Source: Adineta vaga
Taxonomy: Eukaryota; Animalia; Rotifera
Length of the DNA: 64,000 nucleotides
Reading direction: 5' to 3'
NCBI GenBank assembly: GCA_021613535.1
Contig: CP075496.1
Coordinates: forward strand, 10,788,001-10,852,000
Position 1 is the stretch's first letter, and every line of letters begins with the position of its first letter. Shown one piece after another: positions 21,906-29,728 of this stretch. The translations under genes were made by a program, and so were the position numbers. The notes below the pieces were generated by a model. The model was given only the letters and a program-made list of their open reading frames with translations. It had not been told where the DNA came from and ran no database searches.

Positions 21906-23852
21906 TTAGAGATTCTGCATCATTTCGATAATGTCGTCTTTCTTTGGATTTTCTTCATTGGTTAAAGATGATTCCTTTTGATTTAATGAATCCGATATGT
22001 TCTTATTCGATTCAAGTTCTTTTTGTTTTCTATATTTAATTATTCGACTGCGGATAATATAAATAAGCCAGAACGGTTTTGTTGTTAGAAAAGCAACAAC
22101 AAGTGGTACAACAACTGCTTTCGTTGCATAAGGTTGAGGAAATGAATAGAATATAATCATAAAAGCAATACCAACATTTTGTATACCAGCTTCGATACCA
22201 ATAGTTTTAACATGAGTCCATTCAAGACCACATACATAAGCGAGTAAAGCACCACACAGAAAACCTAAATAAGGTAGTAATGGTGCTGTTAATGCTGTAT
22301 ATAAATCAATCATTTCAAATAAATACCAATTAACAATAGTACCGAAAATGAGAAAAAATATTAAAAGAAATAACATCATTGGTTTAACGAGTTTTTCGAT
22401 AATTGTACGAGTTCGTGGTGAATAATGACTGATAACAATGCCAATACTATATGGTACAACAACAAGTGCTAAAGTACGAATAAGACCAAGAAATGGTACC
22501 CGTATAGCTAATTCATCCATATAGATACGTCCAAATGTATAAAAATAAAGTGGCATCATTACAAAAGATGACGCAGTCGATACAAATGACATCACAGCAG
22601 ATAAATTAACATCACCATCGAATAAAAGTGTCCATTGATTTGAAGCACCACTACCTATGTAAAAAGAAACATTTTCATTTTCTTCTTTTTAGAATACAAA
22701 CAATCGATTCTACCTGGACAACAACCAATCACAAATAGAGCAAGACTATATAATGGTGTATAATTAAATAATTTAGCTATACCCATTGCTAAGAATGGCA
22801 TGAGACCATATTGAGAAATAAATCCAATTAAAACTGCTTTCGGTTTTTTCACTAAATGAATTAAAACTTTCGTATCCAATAATATACCCATTTGTATCGA
22901 AATTAGAATAACTAGAAAAGGCATAAAAATAAGAAATGATTTATCTATAATTCGTTTTGGTTGTATAACAAGAATATTGAGTTTCCATGTTCGTGTCGAT
23001 ATGGAATCATCTTTATGAAAAATATCCAAAATAAAAGTTACAGTTGTTTCATCCATTCGTGTACTTTCGATAGACCATAATAAATCAATTTTTAATTGAT
23101 TTTGTAAATTAATTAATGTAGGCGATGGATAAGCATTAAAAACATGACCAAGTACATTCTTTCTAGGCACTATTAATAAAATAATATCTTATAAACATTT
23201 TACAAGTATACTTTTATAGGCATATTATTTTTTTGAAGAAAATTACATTTACGAGGTCAAATTGTAAAGATAAGAATGCAAAAAGAGTTATGTAGATGTA
23301 TATCGAATTATATCGCACGATCGATCGAAGAAATGAAACTCATCTATCATTTTTGAGAAGAATTGTAATGACAATGAATGTAACGAATAGATTTAATCAT
23401 CGAGAAATGTACCTATACTCATGAAAGGCTTTACATAATCGAAAGTACGTACTCTCAGGTCAAAAGTTCAGTTTTGTCTATATGAAAATGATCAACTTAC
23501 AAATGAATAAATCTTCAAGTAAAATATGACTTGAATTATTTTGATTGATTGTTTTTGTTGGTACAAGAACTTCTTTTTGAATATGAACAACTCGTTTATC
23601 AGTTGATTGAATTTGAAATTTAAATCCTATAATATCTTGATCACTGGTATTTTCTTTTCGATGAAGATCATCTGGATTAATTCGTATTGAAATATAACGT
23701 GTTTGAAAAAGTGGCAATTGATATGTTTTCTTCATATATAAATTCAAATTTTCAATATCTTGATCATTCTTATCATTCGTGTTCTTAATATTGATTTCCA
23801 CACTATGAACATATGTAAGAATATGGATAATTAATATCAAATACTTGATCAT
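21906..23852 (-). CDS. SLC10 sodium/bile-acid symporter family protein with signal peptide and extended N-terminus (SLC10A3/A5-like layout)
   Basis: GFISQYGLMP, IGCCPG|SGASNQWTLLFDGDVNLSAVMSFVST and TIGIEAGIQN are SBF-family motifs. Confidence 0.9.
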
Positions 23853-24603
23853 GCTTTGCTCCTGTATTTCGTTTGATAAATATGTCGTTGCGTCTTTTTG
23901 TCTTACTAGTATCTTATCGTATAATATACTTTCTTTCTGTTTTTTATCCTATTTTGTTTTTTTTTGTTGTAAAGCGAAGCGAAAAAATATGTGCACTGAG
24001 AGAACGACAAGAAGATAATAAAAAGAGGTAGAGTTCTTTTAGCGATATCAAAAGTTCATCGTGTCCGACATAAACAACTTACGTGTCTTTATATATATAT
24101 CAAATTCGTTTGTTATGTATTAAATAATGATGAATATTAACCATCTTTAAATGAATATATGACTAGATATTAAGATAAAGTAACAAATAGTTCAGTAGCA
24201 AAAAAAAGAAATTATAAACTAATGAATGATTTCTTAAATGAATATCTAAAGTGTACGATAGTTTTAACGATATAGTTCAATATATAAGTATTCGGTTTTT
24301 CTATTGTAATTTCATTTCATACCTTCGTGATAGGTTTTCATATTCTCATACGATACTGTTCTTCATCTTTTATTTCAAATCGATCGAATAAAATTATAAA
24401 TATCGAAATTTGTGATGAATATATGTATATGTATATATATATACAGTTTCATACACGATAAAACTAGTTAACAGATAAAATACAAATAGATGATTCATAA
24501 AAATAATTTCCTTGTAAAAATTTGTCATTCTTATCAGTTTGCTTATAAATTCATCGTCGCTTCATTCTCGCTCCTTAGATAAAAAAAGTCGAATCTTGTA
24601 ACA

Positions 24604-26241
24604 ATGGCTACATCAGTTGTATCGAAAGATTCATTAAAAATTCTACTGGTCGGTGATTCTAATACCGGTAAAGATTGCTATGTACGAAGACTTCAACATG
24701 GAGTACTCACCGATTCAGATCCCAAAACAGTAATATCTTCTGTCGTTGTAAATTTACATTGATTAGTTGCATTCTTACTAGAACAAATGTTATACTATAT
24801 CAATTCAAATAAGAATTGTTGAAAATACGAACGTCTCAGTTCAACTGACAGTAATGAAAAGTTATGTAAGCATACTTTTTTAAAATACAATAACAGTTGT
24901 TTGTAGAAAATTCCTGGTTCGAAACGAGGAAGAACTGAGATACAAAAATATTTTAAAACTATGGATGGATTCATTGTAATGTTTGATGAAACTTGTCCGA
25001 CAACTTATGATAATGTAATCGGTTGGGCTACAGACATTCGGAAAATCAATAGTTCCAATGATGCACCTTTTATGGTATTAGCTAATAAGGTTTGTCTAGC
25101 TAAAAGATGATAATTATCCTTTTTTATGTTATTGATTATTTTCGTTTTCACTTTACAGTGTGACCTTGAACAAAATCAAGAGATTGATCTTACAGAAGAT
25201 TCTGTGGCTTTTTATTGTGAGGCAAATTGTTTCCATTAGCATTTTGAAACATCAACTACGCAAAATATCAATATTGAAGAATCCATTAAAACGCTTTGTC
25301 ATGAAGTAAAGATGTCACGATATTAATGTTATTTTCATTCGTATATTTTAGATTATTAGACGAAAACAATTACCTCCAGATCCATTACCCGCACTGGAAA
25401 TTGAAATTCAGGAATATACATTAAAAGTTGTAGTCATCGGAGATGTGAATACGGGAAAGACAGCGATTATTCGACGATATGTAGATAAAACTTTCTCAAC
25501 AGCCTATCGAACAACGGTATGTAATCTTTATCTATTAAATATCCAATTTAATAAATCGATCATTACAGATAGGGATGGATTTAGCTTTTAAAAAGATTCG
25601 GTACAGAGAGAACGTTATCATCAATCTTCACATATGGGTTTATAGAAAAATGTACAGATTACTGTTTACAGTCTGATTTTACTTCTATAGGATATCGCTG
25701 GTGAAGAACGATTTCATGGTGTGATGCCATTGTTCTATCGAGAGACTGCCGGATGTCTAATAGTTTATGATGTTACCAAACCATTGAGTCTAACGAGGGG
25801 TGCAGTAAAATGGAAGAATGATTTTGATCAGAAGATCAATTTTTCTAACGATACACCAATACCATGTTTATTGATTGGCAATAAGGTAAATCGTTTTCTT
25901 ATCATAAAGAAAATAAATTAAATATAATATTTTAGTGCGATTTGACAAAAGACACAATTTTTGAAAGTGATAATCTAATAAATGAATTGTGCCAAACGCA
26001 CAAATTTGATCAATGTTATGTCACATCGGCGAAAAATAATACTCATATTGATGAAGTATTCTCATCTCTTCTCGATAGAGTAAGAAGGTAATACTATAGA
26101 AGAAGATATTTCCTTAATATTCACATGTAGATAATGGAAAATATTGATAGTGGAAAAGTTAGACGACGAACTATTTCTGCTACTTTACAACCAACAGAGA
26201 CATCACCATCGAAAATAAATCTGGCAACTTGTTGCAATTGA
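24604..26241 (+). CDS. Tandem two-domain Rab-like GTPase (degenerate N-domain + Rab32/38/29-like C-domain), 9 exons, in-frame TAG at 25237-25239
   Basis: Domain 1: KILLVGDSNTGKD, KIPG (degenerate G3), LANKCDL, FETST. Domain 2: KVVVIGDVNTGKT, YRTTIGMD, WDIAGEERF, IGNKCDL, TSAK and a C-terminal CCN prenylation motif. All 8 introns are phase 0. Confidence 0.8.
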
Positions 26242-26524
26242 TTATATCCAATAGAAAAGGGAATCATTTTCACATAAATATCAAATTTTAACAGATTGTT
26301 ACTTCTAGCTACTTTATTTTGTATAAATTCTTATCTAATCTTTCCTATCAAAATGTAAATATGAAAGTTAGTCTAACGAAAAATTTTTAAATAAATATTT
26401 TTGAACTGCAAAAAATACTTGCAAAAATAACAATAAGGAAAATTTTTAATGATTTATTTTTCAAGAAAAAACGAACGAATATCAATTAGAAAGAAATACT
26501 TTTCCTATAAATATCTGTTTTTAA

Positions 26525-29360
26525 TCACGAGATCTGATTGTTTCTACATGTTGCACATAGATCGGGTAATAAACTATTAATTTTTATCGCATGTTTACGT
26601 TGATTCAATGAACAATTGAATACTCTTTGAAAGGATTCACTTCCTTTTAATACTCGATTAATATGTAATTCAATAGGATTTTGTTGTTTATTCATCATTC
26701 CAATCATTTCACGATTAATATGTATACATTCAGATTGACCATATGTAATAAAAAATGTTTTCATATTATTCAAGGATATGTTTGTTGGATCGAATTGTTG
26801 TTGTTCTTGATAATTTAGAATTAAATTCAAAGCAATCAAATCAGCAATATGTTCACGATCAGTTAAACTTTCTCCACATGGACATAGTGCATGACCAAGT
26901 TCATGAGCAATGAGTAAAAGTGCAGCTAAACGTGTTGATTCATTTGAATATAATTCAGCGACAGTTGGTTGAAGAAAAATACCTCGTTTAGTCGTGTGAT
27001 GACCATTTATTTCGAAAAATTCATGTGTTGGTTGAAGTAATTCTTCTCGAGAACTTTCAATAATATTCCATGCTGTTGATAAATAGTTATCTTCAATAAA
27101 ATAATATTCATAGGGAAGAATTGATACTGTTGAAGATAATTCTTCGAATAATTTTAATCGTTCTGGTTTAATATGAAATTGAAGAGATGATAAAAATTCA
27201 TTGTTTGAATGAGTTAAACGAAGAAGATCACGGAGTTCATATGCAATAGTATAAAGTTCTTCTGTTTTATTAAACATATAATCTTCATAAAATGATGATA
27301 GAGTAAATGGATAATAATATTCAAGTAAAGTAAGACAGTCACTTGGAATATCTTTTAATAAAATGAAGAAAATAAAAAAGAAATAAACTAATAATATATG
27401 AAAGATTTTACTTATTTGTTTTGAACCATTGTCTTGTAGAATTTGTTTCCAAAGACTTTTTAAACTGATCTGTATACCTTCATGAAATACACTAACAAAT
27501 GGTAATAGTTTTGGTCCATATTTATAAACCATTAAATTGCAATAATGTGCAAATTGATCGGCGAATAAAAATCGAAAGATTGAATCCAATTGAAAGAAAT
27601 CTATTAAACGTATTTCAACTGATATAATTGGTGATGAAAAATCTTTAATTTGATTTTTATTATAATCAAGAAAGATTTTCCAATGTGGAATTAATTCTAA
27701 TTGATTTTGTCGAATTATAGTTGAATATAAACATATATAAGATGCGTCACCTGGCCATGCATGAAGAATTAAATATAAGATTGACGATAAAATATAATCT
27801 AACCATGTTTCATATGCCGTTTCGTTGAATGATCGTAAATGAATATAATAATTAAGAAATAATTGACATTGAAAAGAAATTGTACTACGAAATATCGGTA
27901 CATTGATTAAGTATTGTTCTAAATCAGAAGTAAAATTAGTTAATAGATTATAAAGATCTGTATGATTGACTTGTTGAATGATTTGTTTATCTAATATGAA
28001 TTGAATTAGATCACGTAAATCATTGGAACGTTTTACCGATGAATAAATAAGTGGTAAAGAATATGACTTTGAAATTAATTGATGTAAATCATCGCTAATA
28101 GTTGCATTTGTATATGATAATGAAAATGTCAATAATTGTTTATATTCTTTTAAAGTATTCGCTAACGGTCCAACACGAGATGATTGATAACATAGATTAA
28201 TTCGATTCTTTTGAACGTAATGTTCAAATAAACTAGCTTGTTCAATTTGATGAAGAGAAAATAATGTTTGTTGATCTTGAATTTGTCGCTGAATATGAAT
28301 AATTATTTGTGTATTGAGATTTATTGTGTTCATATTCCATATATGTAATAAGGGATGTTCAATCATTTGTTCGAATAGAAAGTATAAATGATTGGTTGTT
28401 GAGATGATTTCATAATTATTTGTAAACCAAAAACGATCATGTGCTAATTGATTTAATTGTTGAAGAAGAACAGTTTCCGAAGTATGAATACATTGATTGT
28501 AGTAAAGAAACATGTTTGAAATCGATTGATTTAAATCATGTTCAGTAGATGATAATTCACGTTTGACTAGTTTGTGCTGTTCATTGTCGTATTCATCGTG
28601 AAAGGAATAGAATTGTTCTAATCTAAATTATCAAGAATATAGTATATTTTATTATGAAATATTTCAATTCGCAGATAAGAAATTATAACTGACTAACTTA
28701 CTCGTTTTTAATCGATGTTAATCCATCAAAATCGACAATTTCTGTTTCTTTTGTAACTTCTGTCGTTTGATTCTTCTTTATTTCTATTTGATAATTATAT
28801 GCATGATTTATACTGAAATTAGCTAATGTTCGAGCGAATTTCTCTCGAATATCTTGAGATCTTTCTGTTAACCAACTTCGTTTAAATTCAAGCGGTGATA
28901 ATGGATGTTGTATTAACCATTTTCGACATACAAAACTGTAAAAATCTCGACATACAGTTGTATTAAAATCTAATTGACCAATTAAAACTGAATCGAGATG
29001 TTGAAATAAACGATGATTATAATTCGTTACATTATGTTCCCACAATATCGTTCGAAATCGATGTGATGGTAAGGAATGTGTTGGTACGGTAATAATTTGA
29101 GTAACAAGTAAAAGACTGAGAATAAATCCAATAGTTAAAGCAATGAAAAGAGCCAGAAAAAGAATTGTAACTTTAAAACGTACACCTGGCTTTTCTGCAA
29201 TTAATGGAAGTGTTAATGATGTTGTTGAAGATGAAGTTGTTAATAAACTAGTTGATGTAGTTAGTTGCATTGGAATGGCAATTGTATCATTGAAATGAAC
29301 TATTTTGCGTGTTGGACTTTTACTAATAATTATATCCGGAGCATCGTAACGTTCGTCCAT
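26525..29360 (-). CDS. Divergent neprilysin-like (M13) type II membrane metallopeptidase
   Basis: N-terminal TM helix, CRDFYSFVCRKW, IAHELGH (HExxH), EHIAD (ENIAD-like), FFITYGQSEC and FQRVFNC. A probable in-frame intron lies near 27355-27411. Confidence 0.75.
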
Positions 29361-29728
29361 TTTATCTGAAAAGAAGAAGAAGAATGACATAAGTGTTGTA
29401 AGAATGCATTCCTCATGAATTACTATATAGAAGTATGAAATGAATAAAGTGATAATAGATTAACTAATTTGCAATTCACATGAAAAAGAATAAAAAGCTT
29501 TTGTCATGAAGGTTATATTTAACAAAATATAAACTATACTAAGTTACGTAGATTTTAATATCAAAATCAAATTTTTCCGAATAAAAAATTTGAAATATAA
29601 CATTAAACTGCATCTTACATTGTCTATATAAACTTGTAAGAGTATTATAATCATGCCTTCCGAACGACCTTCAAATGCCAAGATGACACTACGAATATAC
29701 ATAAGACCTTGGATGTTTCTATATGATA

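Follow-up and report, generated by a model that had tools for sequence, protein, structure and literature searches.

A window of 64,000 nucleotides (nt) from the genome of the bdelloid rotifer Adineta vaga (contig CP075496.1, forward-strand positions 10,788,001 to 10,852,000; coordinates below are those of the window) contains, at 24604-26241, a gene for a tandem Rab protein. The results presented here make it probable that this is a single expressed gene, the intact allele of which encodes about 402 residues with two Rab32-family G domains, a pseudoGTPase (domain 1) followed by a switch domain (domain 2). Both domains are joined by splicing in three public sequencing runs, and the same architecture is found in a second Adineta species and in five Rotaria lineages. 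An earlier note, made from the sequence of the window, had described the gene as a fusion of a degenerate and a canonical Rab that arose by internal duplication. Most of that description stands; it overlooked a premature stop codon in the assembled haplotype.

Gene structure and expression

Direct reading and translation of 24300-26600 gave a gene of nine exons and eight introns on the plus strand, with the following features.

Exon 1, 24604..24729, plus strand: start codon; domain-1 P-loop GDSNTGKD (24652-24675) with Asp for Ser/Thr; 3' limit after the switch-I Thr.
Exon 2, 24782..24850, plus strand: 69 nt; domain-1 strands beta2-beta3; no Trp remains ahead of G3 (...QLT).
Exon 3, 24907..25089, plus strand: degenerate domain-1 G3, KIPGSK (24907-24924), up to NK of NKCD.
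Exon 4, 25159..25305, plus strand: CD of NKCD; ETST (25246-25257); domain-1 helix 5; 3' limit at the parental last-intron site.
In-frame stop, 25237..25239, plus strand: the assembled haplotype has TAG where the other allele has TGC (Cys).
Exon 5, 25352..25516, plus strand: apparently chimeric; copy-1 tail start (IIRRK...), linker, domain-2 N-terminus and P-loop GDVNTGKT (25439-25462), to the switch-I Thr.
Exon 6, 25569..25637, plus strand: 69 nt; domain-2 strands beta2-beta3, last residue Trp.
Exon 7, 25691..25885, plus strand: DIAGEE (25691-25708) with Glu for the catalytic Gln; up to NK of NKCD.
Exon 8, 25936..26079, plus strand: CD of NKCD; TSAK (26023-26034); domain-2 helix 5.
Exon 9, 26131..26241, plus strand: hypervariable tail; CCN prenylation-type end (26230-26238); TGA stop.

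All eight introns are GT..AG, in phase 0 and 46-69 nt in size, and the splice sites are intact at 16 of 16 positions. Each half is interrupted at the same four sites: after the switch-I Thr, between W and D ahead of the G3 motif (T and K in domain 1), between NK and CD, and after helix 5. With a slash for the intron, the motifs read GDSNTGKD, KIPGSK, NK/CD and ETST in domain 1, and GDVNTGKT, W/DIAGEE, NK/CD, TSAK and a CCN-TGA end in domain 2. Direct reading thus bears out the earlier note on the four shared phase-0 positions, on the equal length of the corresponding second exons, on the loss of GK[S/T] and DxxG from domain 1 (GKD, KIPG) with NKCD and ETST kept, and on the WDIAG signature, the Gln-to-Glu change (DIAGEE) and the CCN tail of domain 2. 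The intron positions recur in two canonical Rab32-like genes of A. vaga (L009 and L010, described below), and the Glu and the Cys pair recur in other species.

The halves align with each other over their full length (local score 173). Database searches with A. vaga were run exon by exon, whereas whole-protein searches and structure comparison used database orthologues (P0002, P0036); the joined A. vaga model was used in local alignments and trees only. The Pfam Ras family (PF00071) was matched by exon 3 of domain 1 (E 1.7e-5, 24.9 bits against a cutoff of 21.6) and by exons 5 (E 3.3e-6) and 7 (E 6.2e-11) of domain 2. Exon 1 matched Roc at E 0.002. On reading the sequence, no in-frame ATG was found upstream of the domain-2 P-loop, and no tail exon, Cys motif or stop belonging to domain 1 was found after helix 5.

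Contigs of four public runs (X7, X9, X14 and X15) were compared with 24400-26400. Spliced contigs were present in three runs from three studies (X9, X14 and X15), which therefore contain RNA. Seven of the eight junctions occur in all three, including 24729/24782, both junctions flanking exon 6, and 25305/25352, which links the domains; the remaining junction, 24850/24907, occurs in X9 and X14. A 413-nt contig from X9 joins exons 1-3 and extends into exon 4, and one of 1144 nt from X14 spans exons 3-9 and continues into the 3' untranslated region (UTR). The earlier note had singled out 25305/25352 as the splice on which a single gene would depend, and its presence in three studies, the 1144-nt contig, and the lack of a domain-2 ATG and of a domain-1 tail or stop uphold the claim that one gene joins both domains. 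A 116-nt contig of depth 7 in X14 (record 2, 24821-24936) retains intron 2 (24851-24906) unspliced, a sign that this run includes some retained intron, pre-mRNA or carried-over DNA.

Tandem Rab genes in other bdelloids

Within a word-based search with the R. socialis orthologue P0002, matches that span both domains were confined to bdelloids. The proteins are as follows.

Rotaria socialis, tandem orthologue, 389 amino acids (aa).
Rotaria magnacalcarata, tandem orthologue, 415 aa.
Rotaria sp. Silwood1, tandem orthologue, 415 aa.
Rotaria sp. Silwood2, tandem orthologue, 408 aa.
Rotaria sordida, tandem orthologue, 406 aa.
Adineta steineri, tandem orthologue, 366 aa.
Adineta vaga, tandem protein as deposited, 352 aa.

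This protein search, in answer to the search of related genomes proposed in the earlier note, recovered the tandem architecture in A. steineri and five Rotaria lineages. In precomputed Pfam assignments, Ras (PF00071) appears twice for the orthologues. The next matches to P0002 were single-domain Rab32/38 proteins of insects, molluscs and protists, at 40-50% query coverage. A search restricted to domain 1 returned Rotaria proteins only, followed by a sponge Rab7L1-like protein at E 1e-9. In R. socialis, the locus (L015) is built of the same nine exons, among them the 69-nt exon 6 and the same junction exon. A second (homoeologous) copy of the gene was not found in the A. vaga assembly (six contigs, 100.8 Mb).

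The gene is already represented in the protein databases. An exhaustive protein search with exon 3 of domain 1, which also brought up the orthologues, gave as its top match P0001, which is UJR33153.1, hypothetical protein I4U23_020610 [Adineta vaga], a 352-aa model in which both halves are already fused. Two stretches are absent from this model: 25159-25239, since it takes the AG of the TAG as acceptor and begins exon 4 at 25240, and exon 6 in full (25569-25637). The R. socialis model A0A820KDS2 likewise lacks its 69-nt exon 6. The spliced contigs contradict the omissions in the deposited model. The junction that would give an exon start at 25240 was found in no run, and contigs carrying the TAG splice at 25159, although rare forms can escape contigs. 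The deposited models of this gene family are therefore wrong in both A. vaga and R. socialis, through a skipped exon and a skipped stop.

An intact allele and a premature stop

Exon 4 of the assembled haplotype contains an in-frame TAG at 25237-25239. As a result, no single open frame crosses both folds in the assembled window. A second haplotype carries 25238 A>G and 25239 G>C, which together give TGC (Cys), with linked changes nearby; when the observed variants are applied, the frame is uninterrupted for 402 codons. The earlier statement that two Rab folds lie in one frame is thus correct for the TGC allele and incorrect for the allele in the window. A. steineri, R. socialis and R. magnacalcarata all have Cys at this site, which marks TAG as derived; the assembly haplotype thus carries a derived nonsense allele. 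It was considered whether TAG could be read as sense under an alternative, ciliate-like genetic code. This is ruled out, since a neighbouring open reading frame of 662 codons is free of TAA and TAG, the genome is that of A. vaga, and the TAG is allelic.

In DNA run X7 the two alleles are present near 1:1, with depths of 15.2 for TAG and 16.2 for TGC (of 31.4). In the three runs with spliced contigs, TGC accounts for 11.6 of 14.9, 13.5 of 13.5 and 11.4 of 16.5. The TAG sits five junctions 5' of the last exon, a position at which lower depth of TAG transcripts fits nonsense-mediated decay. TAG transcripts appear under-represented, as such decay would give, though contig depth is a weak measure. 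Since domain 2 has no in-frame ATG ahead of its P-loop, the TAG allele is probably null for both domains. A heterozygous null allele in the reference haplotype of A. vaga offers a handy test case for allele-specific decay in an asexual diploid. Compared with the assembly over 24453-26336, run X7 shows many extra differences that are absent from the RNA contigs, for example at 25484, 25499, 25992 and 25996; either X7 represents another A. vaga lineage in which both alleles persist, or its contigs combine the two haplotypes as mosaics.

The nonsense codon raises the question of whether the gene is decaying in A. vaga, that is, whether an inherited fusion under relaxed constraint is becoming a pseudogene with no important role in this species. 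The TAG haplotype makes up about half the depth in X7, the terminal branches of A. vaga are the longest in both domains (2.22 in domain 1 and 1.27 in domain 2), and A. vaga shows additional motif erosion, with KIPG for NIAG and VTSAK...NTHI for ETSA...NINI. The failure to find a second copy in the A. vaga genome points the same way. However, the TGC allele is unbroken and predominates among the spliced contigs of three studies, every splice site is preserved, and the allelic differences are mostly synonymous (seven synonymous and four amino-acid changes, in addition to the stop). The architecture has also been retained over Adineta and Rotaria. Decay of the gene in A. vaga consequently appears unlikely.

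Condition of the two domains

Domain 1 of A. vaga departs from the motifs of functional Rabs at G1 (GKD) and G3 (KIPGS), both of which fail, and its G5 is altered (TST). The departures are shared in large part by the orthologues. At the P-loop Ser/Thr site, six of seven lineages have His, Asp or Tyr, and only A. steineri has Ser (GKS). In DxxG, Asn stands for the Asp (Lys in A. vaga); Ser occupies the catalytic position; and the Trp ahead of the motif has been lost. Across six orthologues, domain 1 shows no variation in GxxxxGK, NKxD or the Ser of G5. In domain 2, by comparison, G1, G2, G4 and G5 are all intact. Its catalytic Gln is replaced by Glu in A. vaga, A. steineri, Silwood1 and Silwood2 and by Asp in R. 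sordida. A Cys pair is present at the C-terminus of every model that reaches it (CCN in A. vaga; CCHV, CCH, CCQF and CCHI in Rotaria).

Identity between species is 68% for domain 1 and 73% for domain 2 (R. magnacalcarata and Silwood1), and 55% and 60%, respectively, for A. steineri and R. magnacalcarata. Domain 1 is conserved nearly as much as domain 2, and is therefore under selection. The AlphaFold model of the Silwood1 orthologue contains two confident G domains, with a predicted local confidence (pLDDT) of about 85-90 for residues 14-184, and a disordered linker (188-204) and tail (393-415). Among the Foldseek matches listed (ranks 1-49 of at least 500), the best are Rab32 and Rab38, with a template-modelling (TM) score of 0.89. 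Judged from its fold, from motif losses shared by seven lineages and from its conservation, domain 1 is predicted to be a conserved pseudoGTPase. Its degenerate state, already suspected from the A. vaga sequence, extends across the bdelloids, and the structure modelling that the earlier note had recommended yields two confident G domains whose mutual orientation is unreliable (predicted TM score, pTM, 0.48).

These features suggest how the protein may work. The P-loop Lys and the guanine-specificity motif NKxD are kept in domain 1, from which the Mg-binding Ser/Thr, the Trp ahead of G3, the DxxG Asp and the catalytic Gln are missing; the domain is most likely non-cycling and may serve as a fixed protein-binding module. 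Domain 2 is predicted to supply a working switch and the membrane anchor, and a linker of 20-30 disordered residues would separate the two. Given Glu or Asp for the catalytic Gln in most lineages, intrinsic GTP hydrolysis by domain 2 is probably slow. The protein could then be regarded as a long-lived, prenylated mark of Rab32-like type on membranes, with a second surface of Rab shape that does not switch.

Several points weigh against this reading. The RNA nature of the runs is deduced from splicing, and contig depth gauges allele-specific expression poorly. Motifs are the basis for what is said here on nucleotide binding by domain 1, on slow hydrolysis by domain 2 and on prenylation. R. socialis and R. 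magnacalcarata, alone among the lineages, have a normal Gln in domain 2. The arrangement of the domains in the AlphaFold model is not confidently predicted, as noted above. Domain 1 may still bind nucleotide, since A. steineri has GKS and GxxxxGK and NKxD are invariant. Finally, constraint in A. vaga may be weakening, given the longest branches in both domains and the nonsense allele.

The possibility that domain 1 is live was considered in particular. It would then be an atypical nucleotide-binding and possibly Mg-independent G domain, and the protein a two-switch device, like Miro or the active half of EhRabX3. The invariance of GxxxxGK, NKxD and the G5 Ser in six orthologues, the GKS of A. 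steineri, and a level of conservation close to that of domain 2 would be expected of such a domain. Nevertheless, the Mg-coordinating residue is His, Asp or Tyr in all lineages but one, DxxG has Asn or Lys for its Asp, and Ser stands in place of the catalytic Gln, and a live domain 1 is accordingly held to be improbable. A built-in heterodimer is a similarly speculative idea. On this view, the pseudoGTPase would use its conserved, basic 'switch II' (NIAGSQRGKTKIK in most species) to dock onto domain 2, and would thereby govern the nucleotide state of that domain or its access to effectors. If this doubtful proposal were true, bdelloids alone would possess a self-contained Rab32-type switch independent of GTPase-activating proteins (GAPs), perhaps for a lineage-specific lysosome-related or stress-linked compartment. 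The self-regulation and the pathogen-decoy role suggested in the earlier note are conjectural.

Descent from Rab32/38 and origin of the fusion

The reading of the gene as a tandem of two Rab32-family domains is consistent with comparisons at several levels. Against the Protein Data Bank (PDB), exon 7 matched Rab38, Rab7L1 and Rab32 best at 52-55 bits, with the next family at 34, and exon 5 matched Rab32/38 best (31 versus 27 bits); the domain-1 exons of A. vaga alone were uninformative. A domain-1 profile built from six sequences scored Rab32 at 110, Rab38 at 108 and Rab7L1 at 96 bits, against 89 for Rab1A, and the domain-2 profile scored Rab38/32 at 208 and Rab7L1 at 198 bits, against 127 for Rab7. 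In the per-domain comparison suggested by the earlier note, both profiles thus find Rab32/Rab38/Rab29 best. WDIAG is kept in domain 2 (W/DIAGEE, with Gln changed to Glu), and is lost in A. vaga domain 1 (T/KIPGSK); domain 1 of Rotaria has NIAGSQ.

The nearest A. vaga paralogues are L009 (contig C2) and L010 (contig C5), canonical Rab32-like genes with WDIAGQERFGNMTRVYY and FETSAK[DE]NINI. Exon 4 is 48% identical to L009 over 31 aa. The same four intron positions are found in L009 and L010, where exon sizes are 69/192/144, and it follows that the intron sites shared by the two halves are not due to chance. Other A. vaga Rab genes, for example L003 and L004, are uninterrupted over that region. 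Taken together, these sequence comparisons support descent of both halves from a Rab32/38-type gene. The two paralogues have tails that are unusual for a Rab prenylation end, with four to nine residues past the Cys pair: CCGSGGNSDDT in L010 (G000:C5:15414636-15417827) and CCGGKS in L009 (G000:C2:1591054-1594245). L010 possibly starts with a coding exon of 3 nt that consists of the ATG only.

The start of exon 5, IIRRK (IMKRR in Rotaria), resembles the start of the parental last exon, IMKH..., and exon 5 then continues without an intron into ...EYTLKV, the parental N-terminus. We infer from this arrangement that exon 5 is a deletion fusion of a copy-1 tail exon with a copy-2 first exon. A Rab32-like gene would have been duplicated in tandem in the ancestor of Adineta and Rotaria, and a subsequent deletion would have joined the start of the copy-1 tail exon to the first exon of copy 2, giving the chimeric exon. 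In a maximum-likelihood tree, domain 1 and domain 2 each form a clade (support 100/100 and 99/99) with congruent species order, and the fusion is therefore older than the split between Adineta and Rotaria. In the free tree domain 1 is basal on a branch of length 4.4, whereas constraining domains 1 and 2 as sisters costs 0.67 log-likelihood (lnL) units (approximately unbiased test, p-AU 0.28); because of the long branch, it is uncertain where domain 1 belongs with respect to the outgroup. The proposal of internal duplication is thus sustained as to the Rab32/38-type descent of both halves, while the sister relation of the domains is only not rejected.

That the locus instead comprises two adjacent Rab genes, linked merely by read-through transcription or an annotation artefact, is very improbable: gene predictors are known to fuse tandem Rab genes, both deposited models of this family contain errors, and a contig over two genes is by itself no proof of a single transcript, but the 46-nt GT..AG intron 25306-25351 is spliced out in three runs, past helix 5 domain 1 shows no tail, Cys motif or stop, the domain-2 P-loop is not preceded by an in-frame ATG, the frame of the intact allele is continuous, and R. 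socialis has the same junction exon.

Neighbouring genes and other multi-Rab proteins

A divergently transcribed gene of the SBF family (sodium/bile-acid symporter, PF01758) lies upstream of the tandem Rab gene in both A. vaga (21906-23170, minus strand) and R. socialis (L015:1-1302, minus strand). The tandem Rab gene therefore has conserved microsynteny in the two species. Downstream in A. vaga, on the minus strand, 26525-28513 is the uninterrupted open reading frame of 662 codons mentioned above, which has a HELGH zinc-protease motif and no Pfam match at E<=0.001. The next exon upstream of it (28698-29390, minus strand) has a weak match to Peptidase_M13_N (E 6.8e-5, below cutoff). By sequence, this gene looks like a divergent neprilysin-like protease gene.

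Rotaria also encodes other proteins with several Rab domains. P0011, P0004, P0041 and P0043, from R. sordida and R. magnacalcarata, contain two to three complete Rab1/Rab8/Rab35-like domains in 396-636 aa, and may be real fusions or merged tandem genes. A search of A. vaga for a counterpart of the double Rab1-like P0011 of R. sordida returned many single Rab exons only.

Comparison with known systems

Rab32, Rab38 and Rab29 (Rab7L1) have central roles in lysosome-related organelles, in LRRK2 signalling and in cell-autonomous defence, and are recognized as switches with a single domain. They give the best sequence and structure matches to both halves of the rotifer protein, domain 2 carries their WDIAG, and the intron sites are those of the canonical A. 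vaga genes. Unlike the rotifer protein, canonical members have one domain, the catalytic Gln and a switch II of FGNMTRVYY, which L009 and L010 keep; in domain 2 this stretch reads GEERFHGVMPLFY, and little of the G3 motif is left in domain 1. Literature searches found no published account of a rotifer tandem Rab.

The closest parallel is EhRabX3 of Entamoeba histolytica (PDB 5c1s/5c1t), a tandem G-domain Rab. It resembles the rotifer protein in having two Ras-superfamily G domains per chain, within about 390-400 residues, one of which lacks several G motifs and is classed with the pseudoGTPases (PMC8514894; PMC5593906). The tandem of a pseudoGTPase-like domain and a second G domain that the earlier note described is borne out, but such a fusion has this precedent. 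Homology was limited to a 21-residue P-loop match at E 0.007, and EhRabX3 was absent from the 60 best profile matches and from the Foldseek matches listed (ranks 1-49 of at least 500). With no specific kinship between the two, an independent origin follows, and the architectures are analogous rather than homologous. The nucleotide-binding half of EhRabX3 is reportedly the N-terminal one, whereas the canonical half of the rotifer protein is C-terminal; the rotifer protein is also metazoan and of Rab32/38 descent.

Other proteins share single aspects of the design. The pseudoGTPase domains pG1 and pG2 of p190RhoGAP, which reside in a RhoGAP protein and do not bind nucleotide, likewise combine a G-domain fold with G motifs that have decayed, and are kept by selection beside a functional module (PMC5593906). 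In contrast to them, the rotifer pseudo-domain would be a recent copy of the domain next to it, and it retains NKxD and the Lys of the P-loop. Miro has several G domains together with EF hands and a transmembrane anchor. Arl13Triple of Euglena is a multi-G-domain protein that arose by tandem internal duplication (PMC8358228). Miro and Arl13Triple are similar to the tandem Rab in holding more than one small-GTPase domain in a polypeptide, but belong to other families (Rho-like/Miro and Arf-like, respectively).

The tandem Rab gene is real and expressed, and is a lineage-specific variant of a known oddity rather than a new kind of system. Nonetheless, a naturally fused pair of a pseudo-Rab32 and a Rab32 that predates the divergence of Adineta and Rotaria is an independent evolutionary repeat, within animals, of the EhRabX3 design. 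It provides a natural experiment in what a dead Rab domain can do for a live one.

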